Positions 5,060-64,000 of a stretch of DNA of 64,000 nt are shown one piece after another. The position numbers and the translations under genes were made by a program. How positions within the stretch are numbered: the first letter of the stretch is position 1; every line of letters begins with the position of its first letter. This DNA comes from Penicillus capitatus. Taxonomy: Eukaryota > Plantae > Chlorophyta. The notes beneath the pieces are model-generated. The model saw only the letters and a list, made by a program, of their open reading frames with translations. It searched no databases and had not been told where the DNA came from. The stretch lies in contig OZ287700.1 of assembly GCA_965649825.1 (NCBI GenBank), positions 1,364,001 through 1,428,000 of the forward strand, written 5' to 3'.

Positions 5060-5998
5060 CTACTCTGCGAATCGAGTCAGACGCAACGTGATCTCACTCG
5101 GCACACATTTTGATGTTGTCCGAAATGGCAAGAGTGCCGCTTCTGCCACATCTTCAGGCTCCATCTTGCGATCTGCTATGCCCTTCTCAAACTTCCTGCT
5201 GCAAAGATCCCATCGACGAATCGATATGAAAGAGGACACACCCGGAGAATCCTGTACGGACGTAGGCTGGATGAATGAGGCAGACTTTGACATTGTAGTT
5301 TCGCAGTTCCTGATAGCACGAGAGTGTCTAGCCACGCAACGCCCATTTCGAACAGGCATAGGCCGCACGAGTGGTCATCGGTTCAATCCCGGCCACAGAC
5401 CCTATAACAACAACATCACCCTTCACGCGTCCATATACATCGCCTCCGTCGCGTCATACCCGTGTTGATTACTACTCCATCTTCCTGTTCGACCATCTTT
5501 GGCACTAACATATGCATCAGGATCATCGGAGCCATGACGTTTGCTTGAAGCATCTAATGCACAAAATCTCTTTCTGCCTGTCTATTCGTGATAGTTGACT
5601 TGATTCTACTCTTCTGGATCGCCCTTTAGACATTGTCCTCCACTTGGCGTTCCTACGCCGGCATTGTTCACCAACACATCCACTGTCCCGTATCGCTCGA
5701 GAGCGTGCTATAGAGAAGACGCCGTGGCTGGATTCAAAGCTATTAGTGCGTGATATACGTTCGCCACTTTGTTAACCTCGGCGCGAACGGAGAGATCCGC
5801 CGCAAAGGTATCGCACACTGGAGCACCTGCTCTGCGACATCTTTCTCCAGCAGCGTCAAGCGCCCTTTGGTTGCGGGACACGAGAAGAAGTTTTGCACGT
5901 TCTTTGGCATACGCCAAGGATATCGCCTCGCCGATTCCACGCGAAGCACCCGTTATTAAACACTGTTTATGCGCCAACATTCCCAGTCTGTTGTCCAA
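5060..5998 (-). pseudogene. SDR copy 2 (tandem paralog) with two in-frame TAG codons at Trp positions; pseudogene or recoded/edited gene
   Basis: TGASRGIG, VNNAG and YACSK are present, with matching intron positions wherever they could be aligned to copy 1 and no frameshift. TAG at 5606-5608 (EE*NQ vs EEWNQ) and 5328-5330 (LRG*TL vs LRGWTL). Confidence 0.8.
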
Positions 5999-17081: not shown

Positions 17082-17195
17082 GACCTTTCTCCTCTGAACA
17101 GAAGAATCTCTGCATGAGAATTTGGATCCTGTAGACAGTCAGTCTTTTAAGCAACCATCAAGTCTGTAATCGGTGGTGTCTAAACTCTGTCCGTC

Positions 17196-18007
17196 ATGCA
17201 GAGAATTCTGAGATCGTGTTCGGCGCTTCGATGCCATCGGAACGCCGTGTTCTCGACGCAGGTGGATCAGCTGGCGACCCCGGCGACGTCGCTCTTCTAT
17301 GACCGTCCTTTCTACTTGGCGCGTCCCGAAGTGGAGAATTCGTTTTTTGGACGACTCCTGCTGAGGATTGGCGGCTACTATGGAAACGATTCAAAGCGCC
17401 GACGGGGTGCTAACAATCTCTACTTCGCTATGCGTGAACAGGCAGAGAATGCACCGTTCTACAAGGTCATGGATCTGAACCCAGATACCTTTGCTGCCGT
17501 ACACAACGTCCTGGGACTTCACATGTGGCTCGTGATCAACCGACTGAATCGTCTGGAAGAGAAAAAGAACGCGAAGAAACTCACACAGCTCGTCTACGAT
17601 CAGTTTCTGGACGATATCGAATTGCGCGTGCATCGACTGGGTGTTCGAGTAAGGAGATCGAGAGAGCGCGTCGACATGTGCGGAGCCATTGGGATCAGGT
17701 GAAGGTGAACGCGAGATTGGATGATCTCGAGCGGCGATTCTATGGACGATGCCTCGCTTATGATCGTGCATTGGAGAGTGGTGCGAAAGAGAACTTGGCA
17801 GAGGCATTGCTACGAAACGTCTACGACGAATGCCAAGAGAAGCGCTCCGCAGCACGACGACTCGAACGGTCCATCGATGGCACGTGATCCACGACAGGAC
17901 GTTCCTCCTTCGATTGTAGGTATCTAAAACGCGAGATCGAATGTCTGAGACTGACTGAGAACGACGAAGTGCTGAAGGGCAGGATCCGATTCACCACTTT
18001 TGCGTGA
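17196..18007 (+). CDS. CBP3: ubiquinol-cytochrome c chaperone CBP3/UQCC1
   Basis: LHMWLVINRL, YDQFLDDIELRV, FYGRCLAYDRAL, LAEALLRNVY. Confidence 0.85.
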
Positions 18008-18323
18008 CATTGCTTTTGGCAGAGGGTAACGCCTGGAAAGAGTGTGAGTGTCGAGCAGCTTCTCATGCGCCATTCGCGATGTCCATTCGACGACAGCGAC
18101 GAAATCGTGGATGCGACGAGATGACGTGAACTTTCGAAGTCGTTCTGTCTGTTGATGATGACATCGCCTTCGTCGTCATGGGAGATGCACGAAGGCAAGA
18201 TTTCTGTATCGACGGGAGTGTCCTGTCGCACCTGTGGTGACTGCTAAGGCAAACAACGAGCACAAGAGCGCCGCAGTCCAACGGGTCCTTACAACCCGGT
18301 CGAAACGGGACGTGCCTGGACAC

Positions 18324-19156
18324 ATGGTTTTCTGAACCAGAAGCCTTGGCACCCGCTGAGCTACCGTAACCTTCAGCGAAAGTACGAAGCCGAGCAGAAA
18401 CATATGGCACAAGAGCGGCAACGCGAAGCGGCACGAGTAACGGCAACGCACTCTTCTCTGCGCTTAACTCATATACAATGCCATGGACTCTTTTAGAAAC
18501 AGCTGGAAGTGGAGGAAGAGCATTACAAGAGTCTGTCATACCTGAGTAGCCAGGACATCAAAGAATACAGGTCAATGGAAATGGAGATGGAGAGGTCGGC
18601 ATTCCGCCTGTTTCTAGAGATCGTCAGCAGCTGGCCTTTATGTACGTGAAGCCGCCAGGACTGACAGCTCTAACGCAGGAACGCGAGAAGCGTGAGAAAG
18701 AGGTCAGCACGCCCGGTCTCGCGTCCCGACGACGATGATCATCGCTCTGGCGTTTAAGGAGCGACGTATGAAGATAGAGAAACACGACCCATCAGCTGAG
18801 CCGTTCAGAGAGAAGGGCCCGATGCGCACCATGTTACAAGGCATGCCGTCAAACAGCTGATGGATGGGTCAGGAATGGATGGGAGACTGTTTTTAGGTCA
18901 TGCCATGTGTGCAGAGAATCAGATGGTGTTGCATTTGGGCATGTCTGCACCGCATGGCGGATTCGATCCCAAGGCCGAGAATCAGCAGCTTCTCTTTTCA
19001 GGCATTCCCCGAATCTCCCATTATTTCCCCTTTCGACCTGATCTCTGTCTCCTAGATGGTGACGACGATTCGGAAGTTGCGATCAAGCGAAGACGGAAGA
19101 GGACTCGGATGCGAGACAAGGCATTCGTTGACTGGACTGTTTGGCTTCTGATGTGA
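18324..19156 (+). CDS. Cir_N domain protein (CIR1/CWC25-like); 3' end uncertain
   Basis: MVFLNQKPWHPLSYRNLQRKYEAEQK matches the Cir_N motif; downstream LAFMYVKPPG. Confidence 0.7.
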
Positions 19157-19292
19157 CGTTTCTATAGGTCAAGAGAGCGGAGGCGATTCTGAAGGCGGCT
19201 GGGTACGACATTAATGCGATTCATCGACAAATCGATCGAGACGCGAAGAAGAAACATCATCGAGCTGCAAGAGACCGAACGGATTGTAAAAG

Positions 19293-20270
19293 ATGACAAC
19301 TGCGCATCGTCCGACATGGGCTCCCGCGAAAGGCAACGACGAACAAGGCGGCTATCGTCTGTTCGTCCCGAGCGCCGCCGTTTCAGCGAAAGACCTGCCG
19401 GGCCATACAAAACTTAAATTCCGGTACCCACTTCGACTCTCCGAACGAACATACGCCGAGCGGATGGAACTAGAGCAACGGGGCAAGACTCAAGAGAGGA
19501 CCTCAAAGAGAGAGACTTGAGAGTTCGTGTCCTTACCCGGAAGAGACGAATGATGGGACGTGTCTGTCTCTTAGGCCGAGTTGGAGCTGAAAGAGAAGAA
19601 GCACTTTGAAGGTCGTCGGCAAACTGATTCACGAAACGACCTGGATGCGGCCGTTGTTCTGTAGAGTGTCGACAGAAAGATCTGCTGTTGCTGAAAGAAA
19701 CCGAAGATGCACCACATCCTCCACGTCTTCTCATTCCTATGGCGGCAGACGCCGATGACGAAGAGATCTCTGAAAAAGACAGCGATGCCGATTCCGAGGC
19801 AGAGAGCGAAGTGCCTTCTGCACAAACCACGATGCCTTGTTTAAATCTTCGCTGTCTTTAGGACGAAGAGGCAGAGCTGCTTGCAGAACTCGAACGTATC
19901 AAGAAAGAGCGTGAGGAGGAAGCTAGGAAGAAGGTGGTCACTCTTTTGCGACCGAACCATCGATCACGCATCGGTTGATGTGACAGGAGGAGGAGCGTCG
20001 ACAGAAAGAGAAGGAACAGGAAGAAGAAGAGATGCTCACCGGCAATCCTCTGCTCAACAAACCCAACGACCGTCGCTCTTTTAACATGAAACGAAGGTTG
20101 GACCCATCTCACTCAAATGCGTTATGATTTCTCATTCATTTGGCAGATGGGACGAAGACGTGATTTTCAAAAATCAATCGCGTGGCGAGCCCAAAGCGGT
20201 AAAGCGTTTCATCAATGACACCGTCCGGTCCGACTTCCACCAAAAATTCCTCCGGCGCTACATTCGATAG
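19293..20270 (+). CDS. CWC15: spliceosomal protein CWC15
   Basis: [14 protein letters not shown]...[14 protein letters not shown]; C-terminal [40 protein letters not shown]. Confidence 0.95.
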
Positions 20271-21237: not shown

Positions 21238-22784
21238 ATGCGGACACTGCAATCGAGCACGGCCGGAACGAGCATCTCACTCAAAGCGTCTCCGTTTACA
21301 CTCCTCCACTCTTTCGCGAGGCGAAGGGAACGTGGCGCGACGTTTCGTTCGCTAAGCATCTCGGCTACGAAGCCCGCCGTCTCCGTCGGCCAGGCATCCA
21401 CAGCGGAAGACGATGACATCAGTTCCCCGGAAACACCCGTTGCGCCTTTGTGGCAAAAGGCCTTTTCAAAATGCGCCTCGCGGTTTACCCTGCTGGGACT
21501 GACAGTCTCGGCCCTGGGTCCCGCCCTCGGACTCGGTACCTCCTTTGAAACCGCAGATACCATTGCGCATCGCGGACGTCGTTTTAGGAAAGGGATTCGA
21601 TGGATCGGATCCGATCTCCGTCGCCAAGGCGCTCGGCATTCTCACAGTGGTCGTCGCCGTCCACGAGTGTGGGCATTTCTTGGCGGCGCGCCTGCAGAAC
21701 ATCCATGTGTCAAAATTTGCCATCGGATTCGGGCCATCTCTGCTTACTTATCAAGGACGCATTGTCGAGTATTCGCTGCGCGCTTTGCCTCTCGGAGGCT
21801 TCGTCGCTTTCCCCGATGATGATCCGAAGTGTCCGTATCCAGAAGACGATCCAGATCTGCTCAAGAATCGACCCATTCGAGATCGAGCCATCGTCATCAG
21901 TGCAGGCGTTCTGGCCAATGTCCTCTTCGCTTTTGTCATCCTCTTTGTCCAAGTGGCCACATCCGCTGCATCCCTACAGCGAAAAGGCGTGCGTTTGTGC
22001 AGGCGTCGACGGTTGGGATCACCGCAGAGGTGTTGGAACCGGGGGTCATTATTCCCCAAATCCTCAAAGACTCGGCAGCAGACCAAGCTGGTGCGCCACG
22101 ATCTCTGCAAATGATAGATATACCGACCCATGTGATGATGTGACAGGTATTAATCCAGGGGACGTCATTTTGGAGATGGATGGGGTGCTGACAGCCCCTG
22201 AGCCTTCTGCCGTTGGCGTCGTCATCGATTCCATTCAGTCCCATCCTAACCGACCCCTCACCCTTCGACTCCAACGCAACGACAAGGAACTGACGCTCCA
22301 AGCCACACCGACTCAAGGAAGCAAGGGTGAAGGACGGTTGGGCGTTCAACTCGTCTCCAAGTATCATCTCACCACTCGTGTCGCCCAGAATGGTCTCCAG
22401 TCCCTGCAGCTCGCAACATCTGAGTTTCTGAGACTGAGCGGAGAGATTCTGAGAGGACTTCAGCAATTGATCTTCAATTTCTCCCAGTCAGCTGAGAAGG
22501 TATCGGGGCCGGTTGCCATTGTGGCTATGGGTGCCGAAGTGGCGCGTCTCAATGCTCCACAACTCTATCTCTTTGCCGCTGTGGTCAATCTCAATCTCGC
22601 TGTGGTGAATACCTTACCCCTCCCAGCACTGGATGGCGGCTACTTTGCCCTGCTGATGCTCGAAATCGTACGTGGAGGAAAGAAACTGCCGCGTGGTGTC
22701 GAACAGAGCGTCACGGCATCGGGTATTCTCTTTCTAATGGCAGTGGGCTGCTTCTTAGTCGTCCGTGACATCACCGCACTTTAA
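21238..22784 (+). CDS. rseP: plastid RseP/site-2 (M50) metalloprotease with PDZ domain
   Basis: HECGH (HExxH), FAIGFGP, LPLGGFV, ISAGVLAN, NLAVVNTLPLPALDGG; transit-peptide-like N-terminus. Confidence 0.93.
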
Positions 22785-22872
22785 TTGTATGTTTGTGCGT
22801 GCATTGTCTTTCTTGTTGCATCGTGCTTCTTCCATTCTCGCGCGTGTGTACGTTCGTTTATTCTAGACATCG

Positions 22873-25184
22873 ATGGGAAAGAAGAAACCTGCGACACGTC
22901 GTGGTGGGTCGGACACCCTTGTTTCGCCCCGGGCAAGACCTTCGACGACTGGGCAGGATGAACCGGTGACGGATACCGTGATGCAAGTGATAGCGCGTCG
23001 CGTACGCAATGCCCGAAAGAAGCTTCAGCGCGTTACCGTTATCGAAGGACTGCTCGAAGAGGGTCAGACCCTCAACGAAGATCAGGTCAGTCGAATCATG
23101 CCATCCCCCCACCCAACCGACAACATCGTCATGGGATGTGGCAGGAACGCGTTTACATGACGAAGGTCCCACTGACGGCGATAATCGAAGAGCTTGTGAA
23201 ATTGGAGCCGTTGGTTGAAGCGGCACTCGGGAATGAGCTGTCTGAGCATCTGAACACGGCGAAAGAGGAATGGGAGAAGAAACAGGAAGAGGAAGAGGAG
23301 GCGGAAGACGATGAAGTGCCATCTCATGTGGCGCTGGTGGCATCGGAGGAAGGGGGAGAGAGTGAGGTGACTGTCGAAGGCCCGTCGACGACAGCGAAAG
23401 AGAAGGAGGAGACGACGGACGTCGATGTTGACGAAACGACGCGCGACGACAACGACGCGACAAATGCGTCGCGAGACGTACCGACATGGAACGACGAGAA
23501 TGCTGAGGCACTGTACTTTCTTCAAGTGCACCGTCATTACCATGGACACACTTCTGCTCATGATGTGACGTCTCTAGCTCTTTGCTTCTGGTCGATTTGA
23601 TGTACGCAAGTGGACGGGAGAGGATGAGGTGTCTGTGGTAAGCATGGCAGGTAGGGTCGAGCGAAAAAGTGCGAGACGATGATGTGCGACAGAAACTGTT
23701 GACCTCGGACGAGACGGATTTCTTGGAGAGTTTTGGAAGGAAGATATTCCAGACGACGTCCCACGTCCCATCTGTAACATCACCCACATATATGCGGCAT
23801 CTCCATCGCATTCCTTTCCTTGCAGGAAGCATTAGCACTTATCAAAGAATCAACTGCTTTATTGTTCTCTCGTGCACACCCCGATGCTCTGAGAGGTGAG
23901 CAGATTGCAAAAGAGTGATAAATGTGTGAGATGTCTGTTTGTGTTAGTTTTTGAGATTGTGGCAAAGTTAAAGAATTCTGCTTTTGCGGAGGAAGAATTG
24001 AAATTGGCTGTTCATGGTTTCCCGCTGGCCATTGAAAAGGAAGTGAGTGACACTACCACCGAGCACACGGACAAGAGTGAGGAAAAATTGAAACAGGAAA
24101 CCGTACCTCACGCCGATCCCGCTACCGAACAACCATCATCTTACACAGGTCGCATACAGACAACGGATCTATATCACACAAATGAGAACCATATCATGCG
24201 ATGTAGATGAGAACCCACCGTCAACTTCACCCGTTCACCCTGCTACATCATCGCACTATACCCACCCTCAAGACACGGCACCGATGGGTCAGCGAACTGC
24301 CCGGCCATTTTTACCGTTTCCTGGTGTGGGTATGACGACGACCCCTCCGCTGAGATTTGGCGTGACGCCGCCACCCAATATGATGGGCATGCATTCCTTC
24401 TACAGCATGGCACGTGTGCCTGGACACTTTGTGGCTGCGCCGCCTTATTCGCAAACGCCACCAGTCCATCCTGTACTTTCGCATCCGCCGCCTCCCATTG
24501 TGGAACAGAACGCACCTCCAATCGAACCGGACACAGACACGTCGGAACCGGCAGTGGATATGACCAACCAACCAGATCCATCGACAGCACCCGACAAAGG
24601 TATGGCTGCCGGATCGACGCAGATCATCACAGTGCAAGAGAATATCTGCTTGCGTGCACAGAAGAAGAAGCTGCTGAAGATTTTGTTCAAGAGACGCCTG
24701 CCGAAGCAGCCCATCCCGCCGCCACATCCTATCCTGGTGATCTCTCTTCTCACACATGTGACCTTGACGTTGATGGATGACAGAGATGGCAAGGGAAGGA
24801 ATGGCGAACGCAGGCCGAGAAGAGAGCACCAAGCCACAGGGCGTCGCCCCTCCACAGCGTTCGGCGCCGCCAAACGGCGGTCGTTTTTCAGGCGGCCCCA
24901 CCGATCATCGACCCGTCTGGCAAGGACGCGGCCGGTATTTCCATTCGGGACATCGCGGAGGCATGCGTGGTCGCGGTATGCGTGGTGGCGGTCGCTATCC
25001 GCATCCCTACGGTGGTGGTCCACGTGGTCGTCCACCATTTGATCCCCAGCAACCGATGCCTCCACAGCAGTCGCATGCACCTTTCATGCAGTCTGCCGGC
25101 GGCGAAAGACATCCATATAACCCACGCCCGCGTCAGCGACGTGGAGGATACGATGGTTCAAAAGACGTTGGACAGCGCCATTAA
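22873..25184 (+). CDS. caprin-like RNA-binding protein with Pro-rich and RGG tail
   Basis: VIARRVRNARKKLQRV...LNEDQ (caprin N-terminal-like), acidic linker, C-terminal RGGMRGRGMRGGGR. Confidence 0.6.
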
Positions 25185-25214
25185 GACGTACGTGTCACTG
25201 TCGTTTGTGTTTCG

Positions 25215-26099
25215 ATGTCCGTCGACGAAAACGTCCAGACCCTCGTGCACTGTACAAATCTGTTGGGCCGCCGTCCTGATGCAGCGGATACGTTAGATAG
25301 CGGTTTCCTCTTGCTGCACAATCTCTCTGCCGACGAGAAACTGTGCGAGAAGGTCACGCAGAAACTCGCAGGATTGGGGGAACTGTTAGTCAAGACCCGA
25401 GATACGCATAGAGACGCCCTGTCCGTCCTACGCGAAAACTGTGCCCGACAGCAGCAAGCCCTTGCCGAGTTACAAGCGCGCGTGGACGAAGGCAGCATAA
25501 ACGCCATACTGGAAGGGATGCAGCAGCTCATGGCGTCCCTCGAGACGATCGACACGAAGTATTCGGAATCGGAGAGCGCCTTTGCTCGACTGGAATCGTG
25601 GTGTCGCTGTTTGGATATGGTCTGTGCCAAACACGGACGCGCAAAGACGACGGCGGGAGGCGTGTTCATCGCTTCGGGATGTCTGGCTCTGACGCTCTCG
25701 GCGGCAACATTCCTCATCAAGTGCGCTGTGCAAACAACGGGAGGCGCCTTCAATCCGGCGGCGGCATTGATTTTCCGTTTCTCTCCACTGAATACAGCAC
25801 TGGCGGGAGGAATCGTGACGATGCTGGGAGTGAGTGACACACGTCATTCTCAGCGTTACTCTCAGCTGACCCTGACATTCCGTGACTACGCAGACGATCT
25901 GCAGAAAGAGATCGCGACATCGCGTTCTTTCCGCACCCGAGTGCAGCGTCTGCGTCATGCCGTAGAGGCGGTGACCTTATCCTTGCATGTCACCACAGCC
26001 CTACACAAAGTGGAAGCCTCGACGTGGAATCTCATGACGGAATGGATCCGCACGCAAGAGAAGGCTTTGAAGATGCTGACCTCTCACACAGCAGTCTAG
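25215..26099 (+). CDS. intronless coiled-coil protein with a central hydrophobic hairpin, 294 aa
   Basis: Open 294-codon frame; heptad stretches flank GGVFIASGCLALTLSAATFLI and ALAGGIVTMLGV. Confidence 0.6.
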   Translation: MSVDENVQTLVHCTNLLGRRPDAADTLDSGFLLLHNLSADEKLCEKVTQKLAGLGELLVKTRDTHRDALSVLRENCARQQQALAELQARVDEGSINAILEGMQQLMASLETIDTKYSESESAFARLESWCRCLDMVCAKHGRAKTTAGGVFIASGCLALTLSAATFLIKCAVQTTGGAFNPAAALIFRFSPLNTALAGGIVTMLGVSDTRHSQRYSQLTLTFRDYADDLQKEIATSRSFRTRVQRLRHAVEAVTLSLHVTTALHKVEASTWNLMTEWIRTQEKALKMLTSHTAV

Positions 26100-26225
26100 T
26101 TCTGAAGACATTTTTCATTTATCATTCTTTGTGTGCGCGATGAACAACTGCATCGCCCTTGAGCTTCGGTTAGACAATCGTGCGCATTTTGATGAGGAGC
26201 AAGATAAGAAAATGGATGTGGGAGT

Positions 26226-26909
26226 TTAGTATTGACACCAACAACGTGTGCATTGTCCTTGGCAGTCACCCTTGCAGTCAATCACATTTCCTAGAGCTTT
26301 GGGTTTGCGTAAGATGGCTTTGATGCGATGCGGTCCTTTGAGAAAGAAATTCTTCTGCAGATAATCGACGTTTGGTTTTAATCGAGTGACGAGGTCAAAG
26401 GCTAAGAACTCTGGAAACTGTCGGACGAGTCTTTTCAAATCCTCGTCATCAAATCCGATGCCTCTCATGTATTCCATATTCGCTTCCATCTACAGCGGCC
26501 GTCACGATCTGCCATTTGTTTCGAGAGCCATCACCTGTGCAGGATCTGGCATTTCTTGGTGTTTTTCATTCCTCCAGTACTTCTGTGTTCCCCATCCGAA
26601 TGCTTGTGCCAAGCAGCTGTCGAGTTCGTCTGCCTCGAGATCAAGGCGTTCAAGCAGTACTACCGCTTTCTTCCACTGAGCGTCATCCTTGGCACTCGCC
26701 CATTCCGAACTCGATGCAGCCCGTTGCACATAAAGAGCACGACGCCAGGCGAAGGTTGTTGCTGTTCGCTGTGGAAGACGACCACAGACGTGAGTGTCTC
26801 GTACGCCGTTGGCGGCCTTAGGGACGCGGCACGTGGTAGACGGTCGGGAGTACCCGTCGAGTGGGCGGTTGAATGTCATCGGTGGAGAGTGAACGATGCA
26901 AAGTGGCAT
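26226..26909 (-). CDS. mTERF family protein (plant mTERF12-like)
   Basis: QAFGW..., LVRQFPEFLAFDLVTRLKPNVDYL, C-terminal DCKGDCQGQCTRCW; transit-peptide-like N-terminus. Confidence 0.8.
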
Positions 26910-26959
26910 GTTGCACGACGTCAACGAGAGCATTTGTGACTGACTGACTGACTGTCTGC

Positions 26960-29900
26960 ATGAAGTGGGCAGTATCTGGCGACCGTAGATCCAGAAAGGA
27001 AATACTCTTTCTCGCAAACGGGTGCGTGATGCCGCGCAGACATCTGTGCGTCGCTCGAACGCATATGCGTCGTCCTTGTAGCGTCCTTGTCGCCATCGCC
27101 GTCTTGTTGCTCGCCTGCGAGACCGCCGGCGACTCGACGTTTAGACTCGGCGCTGTCCTGAGCACGCAAGGAGAGACGGCAACGATGTCCGAAGCGCGAA
27201 ACGGCTATGAACTCGTTGTCCGTCGAGTCAACGCCCAATCATTGGGGCGCGGATTTCTGGTCGGTGGCCAAAACGAAACGCGAAGATTCCACTTTAAATA
27301 CGACTTCACTTGGCGCGAAGACAAAAGCGACCGGGAGATCCATGCAAAGCAGTTTGAAAAATTGATAAAGAGAGATAAGGTGCACTTTCTCGCTGGGTCA
27401 CATCCGAACTATGCAGCCGATGAGATGCGAATCGCCAATGAGAGCCAGCTTCTGAACTATCAGTGTTGTGCTGGACCCGATGAGCTTTATGCACAGAACT
27501 ATCCCACAGTCTTCGGTCTGCCTGCCTCAAACAAGCAATACACAAAGAACTCCATACGAGCCATCGGTCTACAGGGTGTCGGCAAGATAATGCTGGTATA
27601 CGATGAAGAAAGCGTTTTTACCCGGACGACATGCGAATCTGCCATCCGCTATTTCAAAGAGACAGAATCTGTCATGTCCGGACAGACGCCGCCGATCGTT
27701 GTGAAGTTTGGAAGAGAGAAAAGAGACATGTCGCGTTTCTTTGTGGACGTGGCGAAGGAGGCTCAGGAGTGCGGCGTGGAAGTTGTCTATGCTTGTGTCT
27801 TTCCGAATGAAGGCAAAAAACTCGTCAATGCTATGCATGACATCAGATATGCACTGAGGGCTTTCTTTTTGACAACGGGCCCCACGAAGCAGGACTGGAT
27901 CGATGGATTTGATCCGGCGTTTCGGGCGAATGGTCTACTCAGTGCAGCGCAGTGGCATCCGAATCTCCGATTTAGAGATCATGTGATGGGCTCTGCTGGT
28001 GAGTACGCGGATTTGTATTCGAGGACGTTCAATGGACAGAAACCATCCTACGTTGCGGCTGCAGCGTCGGCAGTGGGCGTCACCCTGACAATGGCAATCC
28101 AGGATGCATTCCATAGCTGTGACATCTCACAGACAAACGGCGACGTGGAATTACTCCTCTACCATCCCGCCACCATTCGATGTGATGAACCATTGGGCAG
28201 AACTGGTTACGAACGCGTATTGACCGCTTTATGGAAACTGAATAGAGAGACGTTTTTTGGATTTGTGAAGTTCAATGATTTTCGACGTAATGATGGACTG
28301 GAGACGGTGACGACACAGGTCTGTGAAGATAGAGGAGAAAATGGAAGCATTGTACGCAAGATCGAGGTTGTGTTGCCAGTGCAGTCGGCAACGCACCTGT
28401 TGAAATTCCCTGCAGAGAATTTCTACAGAGAGAAATGTCGCCCCGGATACAAACAGAATATAGATCCGTTTCAAGAATGTCTTCCGTGTCAACCTGGACA
28501 GGCGTCACACAAAACGGACGCTGAACATTGTGACCGATGTCCGCTTGGAGAATGGACAAATCTGACAGCGCAATCTGAGTGCTCTATGTGTCCTGCTGGC
28601 ACAACAACTCAAATGAGAGGAGCGCACTGTATAGAAGAATGCAAATGCAAAGTGGGTTACTTCAACGCCGCCGGGGAGACGGGCGTCGCCTGCGATCCGT
28701 GTCCCGTCGGCGCTCTCTGTCCGGGAGGAACGGAGCTGCCGATTCCTCTCCAGGGATACTGGGCGAACGAGACACGCCGGTCGGAGATCTACGCGTGCGA
28801 CGACGCCTCCGTCTGCACGGGAGGGAACGGCAACGCCTGTCGACAGGGCCACACCGGAAGGTAATCTCTCACTCTCACTCTCTCGGTCGCGGTGGACGAC
28901 CTCTGTCTGTCTGTTCCCAGGATGTGCGCGCAGTGCGAGGACGGATACTTCAACGCGCTCAACGGGTGCCACAGGTGCCTGGACAGGGGCGTCATCGTCT
29001 TCCTCTCCGTCGCCCTTCTGGTCGGCTGGTACGTGATCAACGTCACCGTCTCCAGGAGCGTCACCTCCCTGGAGATGATGCTAGGGTGGGCGCAGCTGGC
29101 CAACATCATCGGCGACATCAACCTGAACTGGACGCAGAACGTGACGACGATGTTCGGCGTGGCCAACCTGCTCGACTTCGACGTCGACATCCTGGAGCCG
29201 GGCTGCGTCGTCGAGTGGGGCTTCCGCGCCAACTTCATCACGCAGCTGCTGTTGCCGTTCGTGATGTCGACCATGGCGGCCAGCGGATACCTGCTGTCCG
29301 CCGCCGTCCACCTGCTGATCCGCAGCGGGAGGCTGAAGCTGGACGAGCGCACCGAGCGCCTGCTGTCCGTCTTCGTGGTGGTGTCCGGAGACGGCGAGCA
29401 GCTCAAGGCGAAGTGGGACGCCACAGTGGCCACGTTCCTGTCGGCGGTGGACGTCACCTACGTGACCATCGCCAAGTACTGCTTCGACGTCTTCAGGTGC
29501 GAGGAGATCGCCGGCGTGTCGGTGCTCAGGGAGTCGCCCGACGTGCTCTGCGGAGATTTCTACCACCTGTCGCTCAAGCTGCTCTCCGTGTCGGGGATCG
29601 TCTTCTACGTCGTCGGCTACCTCGTCTACCTTCTGTGGAAGCTCTACGATCTGAGGACGCGCTGCGCGTTCGCCGACGCGGCGAACCTTCGGCGCCTCGG
29701 ATTCGTCTATCAGAAGTTCGAGCTGGACTACTACTTCACGCCCGCCGTCATCATCGTCCGCAAGCTCCTCTTCGTCCTCGTGCTGGTCTACGTGAACAAT
29801 CCAGCATTTCAGATTGGACTTCTGTCCATCGTCCTCAACACGTCGTTAATGATTCAGGTGTACACAGCTCCGTATGTGGACACCTACTTTGACGTCCTAT

Positions 29901-31171
29901 TCAGTTTTCTGCTCGTCGCCTTAATGTTTGAAGCCTTTGGCGGGTTAATGTTCTATAGTGAGAACCTGCCTGACGATAACCGACGCATTCTGGAATGGTT
30001 GGTCATCACGTCATTATTGATGTTGACGGTCGTTTTTCTGGTGACCCTCTGTATGGAGATCGCCAAAAAGTTCTGCATGAAATACGTTAAAAGAGCCCAA
30101 GTACTATACGTCAAAGATGACCTTAGACGAAGCCTGAAGAGGGACACATCCGCCCATAGACAGATTTCGACCCGTTCAGCCTTCTCGCAAACTTTTCTCC
30201 GCTCAATGTCGTCAAGGACAGAACATGAAATTAGCTTTGAACTCTTGGAGACTTTTCGACCAAGCTTCGTATACAATAGCATCCGCAAACAGCCGGAATC
30301 GATCAAACAATGGAATGAGCTATCAAACAAACTAAAAGACTACATGTCTGACCAGTCAGACACCGCATATCTCTCGATGAATCCAGTTGCCAAATTCTGG
30401 AGAAAATTAGTGGATCGTTTCCCGGAGCTGGTGGATTTCTTGGCCGTCGCGGATGATGAAACACGCGAGAAATTCAAAACTGTCGCCACCTGTCTCTTCC
30501 GTGATTTCTATCTCACAAACAAATTGACACCGTTGCCGCTGATGGACGTCCTGAACTGGAGAGATCGTGCTCCAATGGCACAGTGGCTGGCCGTAGCGCC
30601 GCCAAAACATCGCGAGTTCTTTCTTCATGTCATGGCCGAGATGTTCGAAAGCAACGAGAACAATGAAGCTGCCGTGATCTTACGATCGAGACTCCACAGT
30701 GGACGACGACGTTTCGACCCTCTGATGGAGAATCGCCGATGGGTTCGAATGAACCGCAGCATCAGCCGAGTTCTGTCCAGTCTGTCAAACGGACTCAGTC
30801 CATTTGATCACACGGCTATGTTTCCCGTCATCCATCTGCCTGGCCATCCGACGCGACCGCCGCCATTTCAGGGAAGGCGTCATCGCGGAACTCTTGAGAT
30901 CATGGTTCAGGATGAACGACGTCCAGTGGCACCAATGACACCGATACCTGGTAGTGAAAAATCGCTGGCCCATGTGGCGGCTGTCTCTGACGGTTCCGCA
31001 TCAGAGATCCGGTCATCTGAGGCACCTGACGAAATTTGCGTAGAGACCTCATCCGCTGGCGAGAGCTCTTCTTCGGCGAAAGATGGATCGGAGAACGAAC
31101 AAAACAACAGCAGATCGCCACGATCTCGGAACAATAATTCGACGTCTCTCGAAGCTGAAACTGACGCTTAG
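26960..31171 (+). CDS. receptor-like protein copy 1: signal peptide + Venus-flytrap/type I periplasmic-binding domain + Cys-rich repeats + about 8-9 TM + cytoplasmic domain; single intron 28861-28920
   Basis: FRLGAVLSTQG...NGYEL...VN...EDKSD...LIKRDKVHFLAGS; QWHP; YVAAAASAVG; FFGFVKFN; CxxCxxG repeats; RLGFVYQKFELDYYF...RKLLFV...PAFQ...APY membrane domain. The true ATG may be 27029 or 27065. Confidence 0.8.
28645..29817 (+). repeat. 1173-bp near-identical segment, copy A (matches 33546-34718)
   Basis: Same length; about 7 exonic differences seen plus a few in the 60-nt intron; abrupt divergence on both sides. Confidence 0.95.
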
Positions 31172-31980
31172 CATCATAATACTCCCCTCCATCGATTTCA
31201 TTCAGGTGACAGACATTGTTGGATCACCTACTGTTTTTTGCTTTTGATTCTATTTCCTCTCATCTGATTCCGCCGTGATGAGTATAGCCACTCTTTGGAT
31301 TCTTTTAGTCGAAACTGTGGGCGATTTGATGATGGGTGGATATTCTACATACAATTCCTGTCGAATCCGTTCATCCACTTGATCCGTTCCATGGGTGTTG
31401 CACTAGTCATTTGTTGTTCGATGATCTTTTCCTTACCTAGCGTATTTGGCTCTTCCCTTTTCTCAGTAGAGTATAGATTTGATGGTCAGTCGTAGAAAGA
31501 CGCCTTCGAATGGGGTCCGTTGAGTCAAATTTTGTCAGTCAAGGTCTCAGATGCAGCCGCCAATCAAAGCGATGTACGTTGAACAAATAAACACCATGGT
31601 CTGTGACGCAGCTCAGGCGACGTTGAGAAAGCCAACAACGCACTCACTCATCACCAATGCATCCTGCCAGATATGAACGCACCGACCTCTATCCCGTGCG
31701 GATTGTTTAGACATGAGAAGGACTTCTGAGAATGTTCAAACACGTGTGTGTGTAAGCCCCTCCTATGTGTTCTGATGCATCCGTCATCATTGCCTCGACC
31801 GAATATCCACTCCGAACCGCTCACTCTCATCTTCACGTACACAGGCAGTAACACCCGCGGTATCGTCAGAATCACACCGCATGCAACAACCAGATATCCA
31901 AGACGCGTTGCTCTCTGTGCTAACCATCAGATGCTTTCTTAGCGAGGCAGCGTCGAGACAACAGTGTTGTAATTGGCAGT

Positions 31981-34900
31981 ATGTATGTGTTTGTGGCTTT
32001 GGTTTTGTTACTCGTAAGGACCCGATGTGATTCCGCATTTCGCGTCGGTGCTGTGCTGAGCACAAAGGGCTCGACGAAAGAGATGGAGCAGGCGAAGAAT
32101 GGATACGCTTTGTTCTTTGACGCCATAAACGAGCGAAATGGCGGCCAGGGGTTCCTTGTTGAAGGAAGGAATGGCACCAAGGGATACTGGTTTCGCTATG
32201 CGTTTCTATCACGTGAAGACGCCAGCGACTTCGCCGTTCACCAACGGCAACTCGACGAGCTGATGACGAAAGAGAAGATTCACTTTCTCGGAGGATCCCA
32301 CTTGCACTACGATCGCATGGAAGTGAAGGCTGCCGTTGACAACGGTGTCCTTCTTTACAAGTGCTGTGTGGATGCGAAAATGCAGTCCCACGACAACAGT
32401 CCGTTTGTTTTTGTCATTCGAACGTCGAAAATGGTCTACACGCACAAATTCCTGGCGGCTTCGGTCCTTGCTGGAAGCCTTCGCTATGGTTTCGTGGTCG
32501 ATGTGGGCGAACCGAGCTTCATGTATGCGTACTACGGAGCATTGGCCTTACTGCAGGAGACGTCTGTTCTCAAGAAAGGCGTCAACAACATTACCTACGT
32601 GAAACTGTTCAATTCTTCCGAGGCTGAACCCACAGCTCAGCTGTTTCGAGAGGTTGCTCGGGCAATGAAGCACCAGAGGGTGGATTCGTTGATTGCAGCT
32701 GTTAACGCCGATCACGGCAAACATATTGTGAACGCATTGCACGAAGCGCAGTACTCTTTAAAATCGACCTTCATCATGAGAGGCCCGACGGACCAGGAGT
32801 GGGTCGATGCGTTTGAGGATGACAATCGAGTGGAACGCCTGGTCAGTACTGTTCAATGGCATGAGAAACAGAACGACCACGATGACTTCTTTGGGAAGAC
32901 AGCTGTCTACGTGGATATGTACACAAGACGATATGGAGAGAAGCCGACGAGCTACAGTGCTGGAGCGAGTGCTGTCGGGGCGACGCTGACCCAGGCCATC
33001 CAGAATGCGTTCGCTCACTGCGACATCTCAAAGACGCATGGTGACGTGGATACGCTTCTCTACTCTCCAGAGGCGATTGATTGTGAGGATGATCTTGGAG
33101 ACAGAGGATATGATCGCGTGCTGGCATCTCTGCAGGCAATCGATATGCAAACGTTCTTTGGTTTTGTCAAGTTTGATCGTTATCGACGAAATCTGGCAAA
33201 CAAATGCGCCACCACTCAGGTGTTCGTGACCACGTCAGCGAATGGAGCGAAACACAGAGATATTGAAGTTGTCCTGCCAGTCGGTGTTGCATCGCATGAG
33301 GCCGTCCTTCCCGCGAAGAATTACTATAAAGAGGTCTGCATGCCAGGGACCTTTGTAGGACCAGATGATTTCAATCCGTGCGTCGAGTGCAGCGAAGGGG
33401 AAGCGTCCTATGAGAAGAACGCGCCGTTTTGTGATAGTTGTCCGGTTGGCGAATGGAGGGATAAAAAAGGGGGATCGAGTTGCAATACGTGTCCAGAAGG
33501 GACAACAACAGCTGCGAGAGAGTCGACAAACCTGAGCGATTGCATATGCAAAGTGGGTTACTTCAACGCCGCCGGGGAGACGGGCGTCGCCTGCGATCCG
33601 TGTCCCGTCGGCGCTCTCTGTCCGGGAGGAACGGAGCTGCCGATTCCTCTCCAGGGATACTGGGCGAACGAGACCCGCCGGTCGGAGATCTACGCGTGCG
33701 ACGACGCCTCCGTCTGCACGGGAGGGAACGGCAACGCCTGTCGACAGGGCCACACCGGAAGGTAATCTCTCACTCTCTCTCTCCCAGTCGCCGTGGACGA
33801 CCTCTGTCTGTCTGTTCCCAGGATGTGCGCGCAGTGCGAGGACGGATACTTCAACGCGCTCAACGGGTGCCACAGGTGCCTGGACAGGGGCGTCATCGTC
33901 TTCCTCTCCGTCGCCCTTCTGGTCGGCTGGTACGTGATCAACGTCACCGTCTCCAGGAGCGTCACCTCCCTGGAGATGATGCTGGGGTGGGCGCAGCTGG
34001 CCAACATCATCGGCGACATCAACCTGAACTGGACGCAGAACGTGACGACGATGTTCGGCGTGGCCAACCTGCTCGACTTCGACGTCGACATCCTGGAGCC
34101 GGGCTGCGTCGTCGAGTGGGGCTTCCGCGCCAACTTCATCACGCAGCTGCTGTTGCCGTTCGTGATGTCGACCATGGCGGCCAGCGGATACCTGCTGTCC
34201 GCCGCCGTCCACCTGCTGATCCGAAGCGGGAGGCTGAAGCTGGACGAGCGCACCGAGCGCCTGCTGTCCGTCTTCGTGGTGGTGTCCGAGGACGGCGAGC
34301 AGCTCAAGGCGAAATGGGACGCCACCGTGGCCACGTTCCTGTCGGCGGTGGACGTCACCTACGTGACCATCGCCAAGTACTGCTTCGACGTCTTCAGGTG
34401 CGAGGAGATCGCCGGCGTGTCGGTGCTCAGGGAGTCGCCCGACGTGCTCTGCGGAGATTTCTACCACCTGTCGCTCAAGCTGCTTTCCGTGTCGGGGATC
34501 GTCTTCTACGTCGTCGGCTACCTCGTCTACCTTCTGTGGAAGCTCTACGATCTGAGGACGCGCTGCGCGTTCGCCGACGCGGCGAACCTTCGGCGCCTCG
34601 GATTCGTCTATCAGAAGTTCGAGCTGGACTACTACTTCACGCCCGCCGTCATCATCGTCCGCAAGCTCCTCTTCGTCCTCGTGCTGGTCTACGTGAACAA
34701 TCCAGCATTTCAGATTGGTGCCATTGCTGTGGTCATTATTGCCTCGCTGATGGTGCACGTCTACACTGCTCCCTACGTTGACACCTATCTGGATGTCCTC
34801 TTCAGTTTCCTTCTCATTGCTCTCATGTGCGAAGCTTTCGGAGGACTAATGTTTTACAGCGAGAACTTGCCAAACGATGACCGCAGAATTCTGGAAATCG

Positions 34901-35970
34901 TGGTCTTGACTTCAAATCTCCTGGTTGTCGGCGTGTTCATGACATTCTTCGTCATAGAGTTGATCAAGAAGTATCACGTTCGATACATCACCTCGAAGCT
35001 CATTAAGTTCGCAAGAGACGAGATCGAAACCGTCGGTTGTCTCTTCTTACATCGTCTCTCCTCTCGAAAATCCCCCGCCTCTAGTGAAGCCTCTGTCAAT
35101 CATGGATCAGACAAGGACGACAGTACCCCTTTCGATCTCTTGGACACCTTCAATCCCCGCTTCGTCCACAATGCCCTCAAGAAGAAACCCTCACTGATCA
35201 AAGACTGGGACACAGTGAGCCGCATGCTGAAAAATTACATGTCCGATCAGTCCGAGAGTTCTTATCTCTCGATGAATCCCGTTGCCAAATTCTGGCGAAA
35301 GCTCGTGGACCGTTTCCCGGAGCTGGTGGATTTCTTGGCCGTCGCGGACGACGAGACCCGTGACAAATTTGAAGACGTTGCCAAATGCCTCTTTCGCGAT
35401 TTCTATCTCACCAACAAAGTGATACCGCTCCCTCTTATGGATGTCCTCAACTGGCGAGACTACGCTCCCATGTCTCAGTGGCTGGCCATTGCCGACGACA
35501 GCGATCGAGCGTTCTTTTTCCAGACAGTCGCCCAGATGTTCAAGAACAATGGAAATCATACGGCTGCCGGTGTTCTGATGTCCAAGATCCGCAACGGAAG
35601 ATACGACCCTGATCTGCATGGCCGTGGACTGAGACATTTGCGTTCGCTCTCGCATCTTCAGCAATCGGCTCTGTCGAGTCTTAAGGAAGGATTGCATCCG
35701 TTTACCCATTCCGCCTATCGCCGTTCGCTGGATCCTGATTCGCTCGTGAATCGGCGCATTAGCGATTTCTTCGAGGCACTGAGTAAAGAATCGAGTGAAT
35801 CCTCGCGTTCGCCCACACCTTCGCCGAACGATCATCCTTCGCACAAAGATACAGACGCTGACCTGGTGCCAGATAACATCGATGGACAGCCATCTGCTGA
35901 GAACAACGTATCGAATTCCAACTCCGAAACGGCGAAGCCTCCGCACGGTGTCGGAAAACTTACGCCATAA
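31981..35970 (+). CDS. receptor-like protein copy 2 (same architecture); single intron 33762-33821
   Basis: MYVFVALVLLLVRTRCDSAFRVGAVLSTKG...; Cys-rich repeats; TM domain; shared cytoplasmic YLSMNPVAKFWRKLVDRFPELVDFLAVADDETR. Confidence 0.8.
33546..34718 (+). repeat. 1173-bp near-identical segment, copy B (matches 28645-29817)
   Basis: Direct comparison by eye; offset 4901 bp. Confidence 0.95.
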
Positions 35971-59970: not shown

Positions 59971-60133
59971 TGTACCGCTTTATTGGAAGCCATGCTTGAA
60001 GTACTTTGACTTTCTATGTTGTTCTCGACTTTTGTTTGAGTGCTCTGTACAATACTCGAAACAGCTGTTTCGAGTATTGTACAGGCTGTCCGGCTTCTTA
60101 CATCAATTGGATCGGTGGATCTCGATGTTTATT

Positions 60134-61403: not shown

Positions 61404-62411
61404 ATGTGTTTGAGAATTTCAGTTTGGGGCGTGATGGGAATCGTCGGAGACACGTGCGCCGCGGTCGCGCACACGCGTCTCGAGGACAGCGAAAAAGAAC
61501 CTCAGTCAATCCAAAGACTACAAGGATGATGCGTACACGTCGGATATATCCCCGGCGCCCGCGGACAGACGTCATGTCGCGAAGCTGCGACGTGTCCGGT
61601 ACGCGGGCCGGAAACCATTTACGTCCACTCGCCAGGCGACTTGTCATGTCGCTATAGCGATTCGTATCTTTCGCTCCGCTTATGTGCATCTGCGAGCCCG
61701 ACGTTTGTAGAAGGACAGCTGAATGCCCTTTAGGTGAAGAAAGCCTGTTCGACGCGTGTCGCAATCAGGAGGTCTCGTAAAAATCTGGCAAATCTATTGC
61801 ACAGGTAGAATTCAGACTGCAAGAAGGATAACCAAAACATGTCGCAACAGATCGCCGCTGAATAAGCAAAACAAACATCTGGCTTTGTTAAATCGCAGAC
61901 TTCAGCTACAGTAAGCAACGTTCTGTCGAGGGATTTAACAAGTTTTTGACAGCTACAGTTTTTAGCCCACTAACTATTTTCAAAACAACAAAGTGCATTG
62001 CACGATGTGCCGAATTCGGTCGTTTGGGACTTCTTGGCCTAAACTCTACTCGTATTAATGAGTTGCTGTCTAGACGAAGTACTGCTGGTTCGCCAGCCCC
62101 GAACGGTCTTTGATTTCAGTATCTGACACAGAACACCAAACGAATCGTGTTGAAAAGGACATACTCCTGGAAGGTCCACCAAGAGGTATGATGTTGGGTT
62201 TTGTCACGTGCCTTTCAGATCGGGAGAGGCCGTCAAGGAGGAACGCTTAAGTACTGCGGAATGCATTTCTGACGGGTTAAATCAAACACACCGTATGACA
62301 GGCAACACTCCGTCGATGGCTCTAGAGGTTTTAATGGACACGATGATTTGCGTTTGTCACAATCTATCGCGTGTTCTTTTACGCCGCGTTTTCACCTGCT
62401 CTCCTCGTTCG

Positions 62412-64000
62412 ATGACGACAATGGGTCATTACGCCATTTCGATCGCTCAACCACTTTCCTCGATGCCGTGTGCGTTGCTCCTCTTGTTTCTCGCGAGCCT
62501 TGTGAAATGCGACAACTCCACTTTTCGTTTCGGGGCTGTACTCAGCACAGAGGGCGATACGGCTGCGATGATAGAGGCTAAATTCGGATACGAACTTTTC
62601 TTTGATACTCTAAACGCTCGCTCTGACGGTCGAGGCTTTTACCTGAGCGGCAAAAACGCGGTTGATGGATTCTACTTCAAATTCGACTTCCTCTGGCGCG
62701 AAGACTCCAGCGACGCAGACATCCATGAGAGAGAAGTGAAAAGACTGATAGAAGAAGACAAAATCCATTTCTTGGGCGGCTCTCATCCAACATATGCAGA
62801 AAAAGAAATGAGTATGGCGAATGATAGCGGCATCCTTAACTATCATTGTTGTGTCGGACCTGATGCGCTTTACGAGCGAGATCGACGTACCGTGTTTGGC
62901 GTCCAGGCATCCAATAAGGAATATACCAAAACGATCATCCGAACGTTGGCTTTGGCAGAAGTGGGTGCTCTTGCGTTCGTATATGGAGAAGATAATGCAT
63001 TCACGCGGACAACGTGTGAAGCTGGCATCAAGTTTGCTGGCGAAATGGGGGCAGTGCATGTGGAGAACTCCACACATTTCATTCGCACATTCAACCAATC
63101 CGTGCCCGACTCAGATTTCTTAGACGATGTGGTGAGGGGAGTGAAGGAACAAGCCATTACAGCTGTGATCGCATGTGTCTTTCCGGATGCAGGGAAGCTC
63201 CTCGTTGATGCATTTCACGATAATGAGTACCCACTAAAGGCGTTTTTTCTCACAACGGGGCCCACAAGACAAAAGTGGGTAGATGGATTTGATCCCAAGT
63301 ACCGAGCACATGATCTCCTGAGTGCTGCCCAGTGGCATCATGATATGAAGTACACCGATAGCTTCTTCGGATCGGCTCTGGGATACACCGAATTGTACCA
63401 GGACAAATTCGACAATCATTTGCCAGCCTATACGTCCGCAGGCGCCTCAGCTGTTGGGTTGACACTTGTGGAAGCCATGAAGCACGCCTTTATGTCTTGT
63501 GACATATTGGCCACGGAAGGAAATGTGGAGAAGCTTCTCTACGATGCTGACGCTGTCGTGTGCGATGACGAGAAAGCGATACGCGGCTATGATCGTATAC
63601 TGGAAGCTCTGGCTGATTTAGACATGGACACGTTCTTCGGTGGAGTGAAGTTTAACTTCTACCGAAGGAACGTAGGGATGGATCCAGTGACAACCCAAGT
63701 CTTCAAGCGAACGTCGCAAGCTGGAAAAGAATACGCAGAAATCGAAGCTGTTCTGCCTTTGGGATACGCGACGGAGTTGATGAACTATCCCGCAGAGAAC
63801 CATTACAAAGAAGTCTGTGGGCCTGGTTACTACGTTGGAAGCGATTCCTTCTCACCATGTGTGATGTGTGAACCAGGAGAAATCTCCGATCAAAATAACG
63901 CCAAACATTGCGACAGCTGTCCAGTGGGTTATTGGACAAATAAACCTGGTCAGCACAAGTGTGAACTGTGTCCAGAAGGAACACATACAGAGATTCGAGG
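62412..64000 (+). CDS. receptor-like protein copy 3 (Venus-flytrap + Cys-rich repeats), runs off the window
   Basis: MTTMGH...ALLLLFLASLVKCDNSTFRFGAVLSTEG...IHFLGGSHPTY...YHCCVGPD...AQWH...FFGGVKFN...CELCPEG; open to the window end. Confidence 0.85.
   Translation, partial: MTTMGHYAISIAQPLSSMPCALLLLFLASLVKCDNSTFRFGAVLSTEGDTAAMIEAKFGYELFFDTLNARSDGRGFYLSGKNAVDGFYFKFDFLWREDSSDADIHEREVKRLIEEDKIHFLGGSHPTYAEKEMSMANDSGILNYHCCVGPDALYERDRRTVFGVQASNKEYTKTIIRTLALAEVGALAFVYGEDNAFTRTTCEAGIKFAGEMGAVHVENSTHFIRTFNQSVPDSDFLDDVVRGVKEQAITAVIACVFPDAGKLLVDAFHDNEYPLKAFFLTTGPTRQKWVDGFDPKYRAHDLLSAAQWHHDMKYTDSFFGSALGYTELYQDKFDNHLPAYTSAGASAVGLTLVEAMKHAFMSCDILATEGNVEKLLYDADAVVCDDEKAIRGYDRILEALADLDMDTFFGGVKFNFYRRNVGMDPVTTQVFKRTSQAGKEYAEIEAVLPLGYATELMNYPAENHYKEVCGPGYYVGSDSFSPCVMCEPGEISDQNNAKHCDSCPVGYWTNKPGQHKCELCPEGTHTEIR

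Follow-up and report, generated by a model that had tools for sequence, protein, structure and literature searches.

In mammals the paralogous pairs BMP8A/B, DDX19A/B and TUBG1/2 undergo mosaic concerted evolution with raised GC content both at third codon positions (GC3) and in introns, which has been attributed to biased gene conversion (PMC2720389). A passage of the same article cites mammalian histones (Galtier 2003) likewise as a system of this type. Here we describe a comparable locus in a 64 kb stretch of DNA from the siphonous green alga Penicillus capitatus (contig OZ287700.1), which we refer to as the window and whose coordinates are used throughout. The locus consists of two tandem genes, A and B, predicted to encode receptor- or channel-like membrane proteins, which share a nearly identical, GC3-rich tract of 1173 bp between strongly diverged flanks of about 50% identity. 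As in the mammalian pairs, concerted evolution affects one portion of each gene and not the diverging remainder, the paralogs group by species, third positions and introns are enriched in GC, and the two copies are stable. In contrast to those pairs, the compositional shift is far stronger, with GC3 rising from 0.55 to 0.92-0.98 between flanks that are saturated at silent sites. The tract is also short (1.17 kb) and has the same edges in two species, and its setting is a siphonous green alga and an uncharacterised receptor/channel family. The locus is a strong new instance of a known process in a new host and gene family; the mechanism itself is known.

Two other kinds of system invite comparison. 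GC-biased conversion at allelic hotspots and in ribosomal or histone arrays resembles what we observe in that a position-blind push towards G and C coincides with recombining DNA, and in that variants are skewed from G/C towards A/T. The difference is that the partner here is a paralog 4.9 kb away, and that we infer the bias from composition. Cassette systems, such as antigenic-variation families and chimeric receptor repertoires, also combine a constant module with divergent ligand-binding parts. However, there are two copies here, with neither a silent donor archive nor one-way transfer, it is the constant part that moves, and two further paralogs, C and D, stand outside the exchange. We found no donor archive among the 21 relatives retrieved with the open reading frame (ORF) of gene B exon 2 from a protein database clustered at 90% identity, where only A and B carry the segment.

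Identity and edges of the shared tract

Genes A and B lie head to tail on the forward strand and their copies of the tract are 4901 bp apart. Copy A occupies 28645-29817 (+) and contains the last two cysteine-rich modules of the extracellular region, a 60-nt intron and the predicted transmembrane segments TM1 to TM5, that is five of about eight such segments. Copy B occupies 33546-34718 (+) and corresponds to residues 522-893 of the B protein. The tract runs from a cysteine-rich module with the motif C(K/I)CKVGYF to the sequence NNPAFQIG, which lies between TM5 and TM6. At a constant offset of 4901 bp the copies align without gaps, with 12 mismatches in 1173 positions. The intron accounts for four of the differences, six are in synonymous codons, and a single Gly/Glu codon has two bases changed. 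A first-pass annotation of the window had described these two segments as nearly identical, intron included, and its coordinates prove correct.

The edges of the tract are sharp. On the left the last mismatch of the flank is at 28644 and the next is at 28774, leaving a run of 129 matches that has a probability of about 3e-34 at the background match rate of 0.55. On the right the last mismatch within the tract is at 29584, and dense mismatches begin at 29818. Measured in 100-nt windows, identity drops at the edges from 96-100% to 45-77% over a single window. Identity at four-fold degenerate sites is 0.97 in the tract and 0.20-0.41, which is saturated, over most of the remaining genes, with one cytosolic block at 0.58.

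The flanks were also said to be strongly diverged even in protein. This holds for the ectodomain, where A and B share 40% of residues, and for the post-tract region as a whole, at 48%. It does not hold for TM6 to TM8 and the cytosolic block, which are 72-90% identical in protein although they lie beyond the tract. We considered the cytosolic block (30332-30654 in A, 35227-35549 in B; 78% DNA identity, 0.58 at four-fold sites) as a second conversion tract and rejected it, as C and D are 72-74% identical to A and B over the same block. The similarity there mainly reflects strong protein conservation, with no recent tract. Protein identity over the block (YLSMNPVAKFWRKLVDRFPELVDFLAVADDETR...) is about 90% among A, B, C, D and Caulerpa; in DNA all the paralogs share 72-79%, and no Pfam model corresponds to it.

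Recurrent conversion between the genes in two species

To place the two genes in time we compared the window copies (W_A and W_B) with two further assemblies. Copy E comes from the ENA metagenome assembly ERZ25074695 (ctg340425_37x_l, 702,701 bp) and, at 99.7% identity to the window, is another haplotype or strain of the same species. This contig also holds paralog D (L006) and the full gene of paralog C (L003). Copy R comes from ENA ERZ26696514 (ctg303812_167.69x_l, 1.68 Mb); its locus (L004) is syntenic with the window and 87.4% identical across 22 kb, and it represents a related species. Within-species variation was sampled from two haplotypes only, W and E. A tandem pair from a more distant, AT-richer relative, S1 and S2 (L005, Logan SRR33785045), served as a further comparison.

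R_A and R_B contain the same tract with the same edges, and are about 99% identical over it. At four-fold sites the divergence between A and B within the tract is 0.025 in W and 0.044 in R, against 0.57-0.72 in the flanks. Between W and R the corresponding divergence inside the tract is 0.20, which is 5-8 times the divergence between A and B within a species and places the homogenisation after the split in both lineages. The informative sites give the same picture. In the tract (28645-29817) 70 sites group the paralogs by species and none follow orthology, whereas in the left flank 2 sites group by species and 117 follow orthology, and in the right flank 1 site groups by species and 150 follow orthology. 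The intron behaves like the coding sequence around it. Its length is 60 nt in W_A and W_B, 50 nt in R_A and R_B, and 66 nt in the E allele of A; it is homogenised within each species and different between species. The shared intron and the four-fold identity of 0.97 together demonstrate that homogenisation acts on the DNA, which excludes mere protein conservation and retro-copying. In W, E and R alike there are exactly two genes and the flanks on either side are orthologous, and this arrangement in both species argues against unequal crossing-over.

Recurrent interlocus gene conversion between A and B, as the first-pass annotation had proposed, is therefore almost certain, with 70 sites to 0 for grouping by species in the tract and 3 to 267 in the flanks. 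Conversion has been active in at least two species since their split, with the same tract edges in each. The annotation had also argued, from the local GC3 shift, against one recent duplication, and we concur that there was more than one event: a single duplication can yield neither saturated flanks on both sides nor grouping by species in two species. It had further named assembly or polishing error as one outcome that would refute its proposal. Polishing is well known to cause cross-talk between repeats such as these, 1.2 kb long, almost identical and separated by 4.9 kb, and the A tract does differ more than expected between the assemblies of the same species. However, the tract is present in A and in B in all three assemblies, and in each of them the copies have differences of their own. 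As far as the sequence data show, assembly or polishing error is excluded, and we regard any account that relies on an artefact, a collapsed repeat or one recent segmental duplication as vanishingly improbable.

Theory gives the expected divergence between converting paralogs as approximately theta + mu/c. Taken with the silent divergence of 0.025-0.044, this implies a per-site conversion rate of about 25-50 times the mutation rate. The occurrence of the same edges in two species fits a self-reinforcing homology barrier, in which flanks of 50-70% identity would be too diverged for heteroduplex to extend into them and the edges would stay fixed. Selection may also contribute, by disfavouring chimeras in the ligand-binding or tail regions.

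The comparison of W with E shows that exchange has not ceased. Of the 46 single-nucleotide polymorphisms (SNPs) in 20.4 kb, 14 lie in the A tract, whose intron also has a 6-nt indel. The SNPs amount to a difference of 1.2% there against a background of 0.17% (p=2e-7); in the 5.6 kb upstream of 28203 there are no differences at all. Site 28774/33675 is polymorphic in both genes, with A in W_A, C in W_B, C in E_A and A in E_B. This is a single site in two haplotypes. Polymorphism shared between paralogs is a strong indicator of gene conversion (PMC3924837), and its combination here with raised diversity in the A tract is as expected for two exchanging loci (PMC3924837). Conversion is still ongoing in the species of the window, a statement that rests on this one polymorphism shared by the paralogs. 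There are eight sites at which W_A stands alone against E_A, W_B and E_B, and we asked whether a third donor could account for the 14 SNPs and the 6-nt indel of the W_A tract. With R as outgroup, some of these apparently private W_A states are ancestral (29323, 29388) and others derived, and among the 21 relatives there is no further cluster bearing the cassette. Exchange between two loci with segregating variants thus suffices. The differences between W and E are patchy on a larger scale as well (16502-36873 compared with ENA locus L002). The stretch from 16.5 to 22.6 kb has 27 SNPs and 22601-28203 has none, after which comes the cluster in the A tract; this pattern suggests haplotype blocks with very different coalescence times.

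Composition of the tract and its possible cause

The tract stands apart in base composition. Over its 370 codons GC3 is 0.908 in A and 0.911 in B, compared with 0.53-0.60 in the remainder of the two genes (Fisher p = 2e-42 and 7e-34). It reaches 0.78 in the exon-1 part and 0.936 in the exon-2 part, and windows of 50 codons reach 0.94-1.00. The first-pass annotation had noted that third positions were almost all G or C, and its spot counts of GC are in line with the total GC of the tract, 0.61-0.67. Elsewhere in the 64 kb no 300-nt window exceeds 0.79 GC at any codon phase. The window as a whole has a GC content of 0.51, which is close to the published 52.4% of Ostreobium and unlike the 40.4% of Caulerpa (bioRxiv 10.1101/2020.07.21.211367).

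High GC3 and homogenisation go together. GC3 is 0.91-0.93 in all four homogenised copies (W_A, W_B, R_A and R_B) and in none of the five non-homogenised ones. Over the stretch homologous to the tract, paralog C is 67-68% identical in DNA to A and B with a GC3 of 0.58, paralog D has a GC3 of 0.48-0.67 (C and D together span 67-75% identity to A and B), and S1 and S2 are 71% identical with a GC3 of 0.45-0.67 and no sign of homogenisation. An excess of GC3 only where homogenisation occurs is what GC-biased conversion predicts, and the bias that the annotation had attached to conversion is borne out to this extent. We had considered paralog C as a carrier of the cassette and dropped it, as the full gene (L003) lacks homogenisation.

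The codons themselves point to a pressure of a general kind. G- and C-ending synonyms are mixed (GTG 17 and GTC 26, CTG 26 and CTC 15, GCC 18 and GCG 11, ACG 10 and ACC 9), and swaps between C and G make up 45-50% of the four-fold differences between species in the tract, compared with about 20% in the flanks. The pressure would therefore be for G or C and not for particular codons. It appears to reach beyond third positions: GC at first and second positions is 0.586 and 0.405 in the tract, against 0.515 and 0.371 in C. TTR leucine and AGA arginine codons are almost absent, and the residues FYMINK make up 0.24 of the tract compared with 0.34 in C (p=0.012), a shift not seen in the post-tract control region of A and B. 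Intron GC is 0.57-0.66 (0.567 for the gene A intron), above the 0.52 of the C intron and the 0.47-0.50 of intergenic DNA. All six clean synonymous differences between the A and B tracts are exchanges between G/C and A/T, and the within-species variants of the tract, with R as outgroup, are mostly derived changes from G/C to A/T. This skew fits AT-biased mutation opposed by a fixation bias.

A and B are ancient tandem paralogs predicted to encode receptor- or channel-like proteins, in which everything beyond the tract evolves independently while recurrent non-allelic conversion keeps the 1173-bp segment uniform. We propose that mismatches in heteroduplex between the copies would be repaired preferentially to G/C, such that new mutations from G/C to A/T in one copy would be erased by the other and changes in the opposite direction would spread. 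Over a long time the silent sites would approach about 92% G/C, with first and second codon positions and the choice of amino acids nudged slightly the same way. We put the probability of this explanation as a whole, recurrent interlocus conversion together with GC-biased repair, at roughly 0.68. Taken by itself, GC-biased repair is probably the cause of the GC3 excess.

Several observations weigh against this explanation. The intron reaches 57-66% GC while GC3 in the tract is 91-94%, and it diverges faster between the species (about 45% including indels) than the four-fold sites do (20%). A position-blind bias should raise both the GC of the intron and GC3, unless the pyrimidine tract and splice signals of so short an intron limit its composition. 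Among glycine codons GGA is still common, at 9 of 29, and the exon-1 part of the tract, with its GC3 of 0.78, lags behind the exon-2 part. At 29323 a derived change from C to A is present in three of the four sampled copies. The fixed differences between W and R are unpolarised, every available outgroup being saturated at silent sites. To our knowledge GC-biased conversion has no demonstration in this algal order.

Some of these points would be expected if conversion were unbiased and GC3 were kept by selection on silent sites, for instance for the kinetics of translation or membrane insertion, for a stable or suitably folded mRNA, or for the level of expression, with conversion only spreading the selected state. 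This is the main rival, second to GC-biased conversion. It would accommodate a GC3 of 0.91-0.94 far above the intron GC of 0.57-0.66 in the same tract, an intron that evolves faster than the four-fold sites, and the retention of GGA for glycine. Set against it, the G- and C-ending synonyms are interchangeable and C-to-G swaps in either direction dominate the silent differences, which is unlike codon selection matched to tRNAs. C, D and S1/S2 encode the same transmembrane segments with ordinary GC3, arguing that there is no general need for GC-rich codons. In addition, amino-acid usage and codon positions 1 and 2 are shifted too, and the effect ends exactly where conversion does, in the middle of an exon and of a domain. 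On balance we consider selection on silent sites unlikely as the source of the GC3 excess.

The first-pass annotation had offered, as another possibility, cassette exchange with a GC-rich donor. In its simplest form, the GC3-rich segment would have been gained once, before W and R split, from a GC-rich paralog or foreign DNA, and then shared by A and B. The coincidence of the compositional shift with the edges of identity does resemble a pasted block, and a database clustered at 90% identity cannot prove the absence of a donor. Yet among the 21 relatives only orthologues of A and B carry the segment, and all four other family members checked in DNA have a GC3 of 0.45-0.67. The protein encoded by the tract is that of an ordinary family member, 61% identical to C. 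GC3 is also still 0.91-0.93 in both species after a silent divergence of 0.20, half of the changes being between C and G. As current variants are mostly from G/C to A/T and GC3 is nevertheless kept, some force must maintain the composition now. We therefore set the donor idea aside, finding no other cassette-bearing or GC3-rich member among the 21 relatives and normal GC3 in C and D, and judge a single acquisition to be a long shot.

The same data limit how far the finding can be generalised. The annotation had envisaged a repertoire of variable sensors joined to a constant transducer. A constant tract beside diverged ectodomains is indeed present, but the term overstates a case of two adjacent genes, as there is no family-wide cassette. 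Normal GC3 and proportional divergence in other paralogs were to count against its proposal; a family-wide reading fails on this point, and conversion between A and B stands.

The composition of the tract has a further consequence. Long ORFs of 222-507 amino acids lie over it in alternative frames, at 28579-29892 (+), 33480-34781 (+), 33235-34758 (-) and 28789-29457 (-). We rejected a hidden function for them, as they are a by-product of a GC3 of about 0.95: a stop in any of these frames would require A or T at the third position of the sense codon, and so the frames stay open.

Gene structure, protein family and significance of the locus

Exon 1 of gene A (27065..28860, +; ORF 26960-28864) is predicted to encode a signal peptide, a periplasmic-binding-protein (Venus-flytrap-like) ectodomain and cysteine-rich modules. 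We place its start at 27065, as a 599-residue gene call in ENA begins at the equivalent ATG. Pfam matches in this exon are Peripla_BP_6 (6e-11) and Ephrin_rec_like (4e-7), with NCD3G and DUF7630 under the cut-off. The intron (28861..28920, +; 60 nt, GT..AG) lies within the homogenised tract with the junctions GGAAG/GTAATC...CCCAG/GATGTG, and its splicing unites the two ORFs in frame. Exon 2 (28921..31171, +; ORF 28892-31171) encodes the end of the cysteine-rich region, about eight putative transmembrane segments of TRP/PF06011-like type and a cytosolic tail, and the spliced product has 1349 residues from 27065. A spacer of 809 bp (31172..31980) with a GC content of 0.465 and no homogenisation separates the genes. 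Exon 1 of gene B (31981..33761, +; ORF 31981-33765) again encodes a periplasmic-binding-protein ectodomain and cysteine-rich modules, with matches to Peripla_BP_6 (1e-9) and Ephrin_rec_like (1e-7) and corresponding 594-residue gene calls in E and R. It is followed by a 60-nt GT..AG intron (33762..33821, +) and by exon 2 (33822..35970, +; ORF 33793-35970), which encodes the transmembrane domain and cytosolic tail and brings the spliced product to 1309 residues. Hydropathy places the transmembrane segments of B at residues 617-635, 814-832, 867-885, 889-907, 919-937 and 953-971, with two weaker ones. At gathering thresholds no RNA family was found in the region.

Paralog C begins near 62335 and its first exon (62335..64000, +) continues past the end of the window; a tblastn match over 62505-63998 shows 43% identity to B, and the gene is outside the homogenisation. 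In L003 its exons lie at 15177-17083 and 17130-19323, separated by a 46-nt intron at the same position as in A and B. The A protein is 51-61% identical to C. The family has at least four members on the contig, with relatives in other Bryopsidales. A and B, at about 1300 residues each, have a common predicted layout of a signal peptide, a Peripla_BP_6 ectodomain, Ephrin_rec_like/DUF7630 cysteine-rich modules, about eight transmembrane segments and a long cytosolic tail. An exhaustive HMMER search returned 1483 representatives at E<=1e-3, with 57 of them at E<=1e-30; many of the top matches have 1200-1500 residues, and the matched part is the C-terminal half. With the spliced full-length B protein as query there was one match, from Caulerpa (P0001).

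The layout resembles both Venus-flytrap receptors with a cysteine-rich linker, as in the class C G-protein-coupled receptors (GPCRs), and the TRP-like PF06011 proteins of fungi and protists (Flc/Pkd2-type), in that a periplasmic-binding-type ectodomain, a cysteine-rich stalk and several transmembrane segments are combined. The likeness to PF06011 proteins extends to the transmembrane domains of close paralogs, which match this model: against a cut-off of 28.5 bits, the C orthologue P0127 scores 30.4 bits and a Bryopsis protein, P0141, 36.3 bits. In contrast, the exon-2 products of A and B gave no PF06011 match at E<1, and their membership of this family would follow by homology only, from about 50-61% identity to C over the domain. 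A and B also have no match to 7tm_3, and NCD3G reaches 24.4 bits against a cut-off of 38.9; without 7tm_3 they are not class C GPCRs. Judging from domain names only, the layout suggests a ligand-sensing TRP-like membrane protein.

The remainder of the window contains several features of other kinds. The best-matching named relatives of a kinesin-13 gene come from Caulerpa lentillifera (70%) and Bryopsis sp. KO-2023 (61%). Positions 3674-4594 and 5089-5980 form a direct repeat (about 900 bp, 64% identity), possibly another old tandem gene duplication. Between 59000 and 60000 a run of short ORFs carries TPR-like repeats (...AL.I..KA..LCERI.G..H......C..N.A...) and is probably one multi-exon or decayed repeat-protein gene. 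A perfect 40-bp palindrome at 60045-60084 is present in the ENA copy too (L003 12888-12927). The stretch 60179-61400 (ORF 60545-61237) resembles the C-terminal end of the ORF of a retrotransposon lacking long terminal repeats (non-LTR), with a zinc-knuckle-like motif CxxC...HxxxC. A copy 93.8% identical to this fragment lies in reverse orientation at L006 14073-14880, about 100 kb along the same ENA contig, and the fragment is therefore a dispersed repeat.

The locus is a very clean natural case of partial-gene concerted evolution, with edges that can be placed to the nucleotide and that two species have in common. It offers indirect evidence for GC-biased repair in siphonous green algae, for which we know of no prior evidence, and it is a small locus in which the rate and the bias of conversion could be measured. 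It also carries a warning for annotation, as trees built on the transmembrane region will wrongly show A and B as recent duplicates, and the GC3-rich stretch opens long spurious ORFs that may mislead gene callers. Why the edges lie where they do is a question with a more speculative answer. A and B may be two ligand-sensing subunits that need an identical stalk and TM1-TM5 core, with selection holding the edges and conversion keeping this module matched, an idea that we consider doubtful. If it were true, the shared core would serve for co-assembly in one TRP-like oligomer or for docking to the same partner. The pair would then form a two-sensor, one-transducer module, and the locus would also report naturally on GC-biased repair of unusual strength in a green alga with coenocytic organisation.

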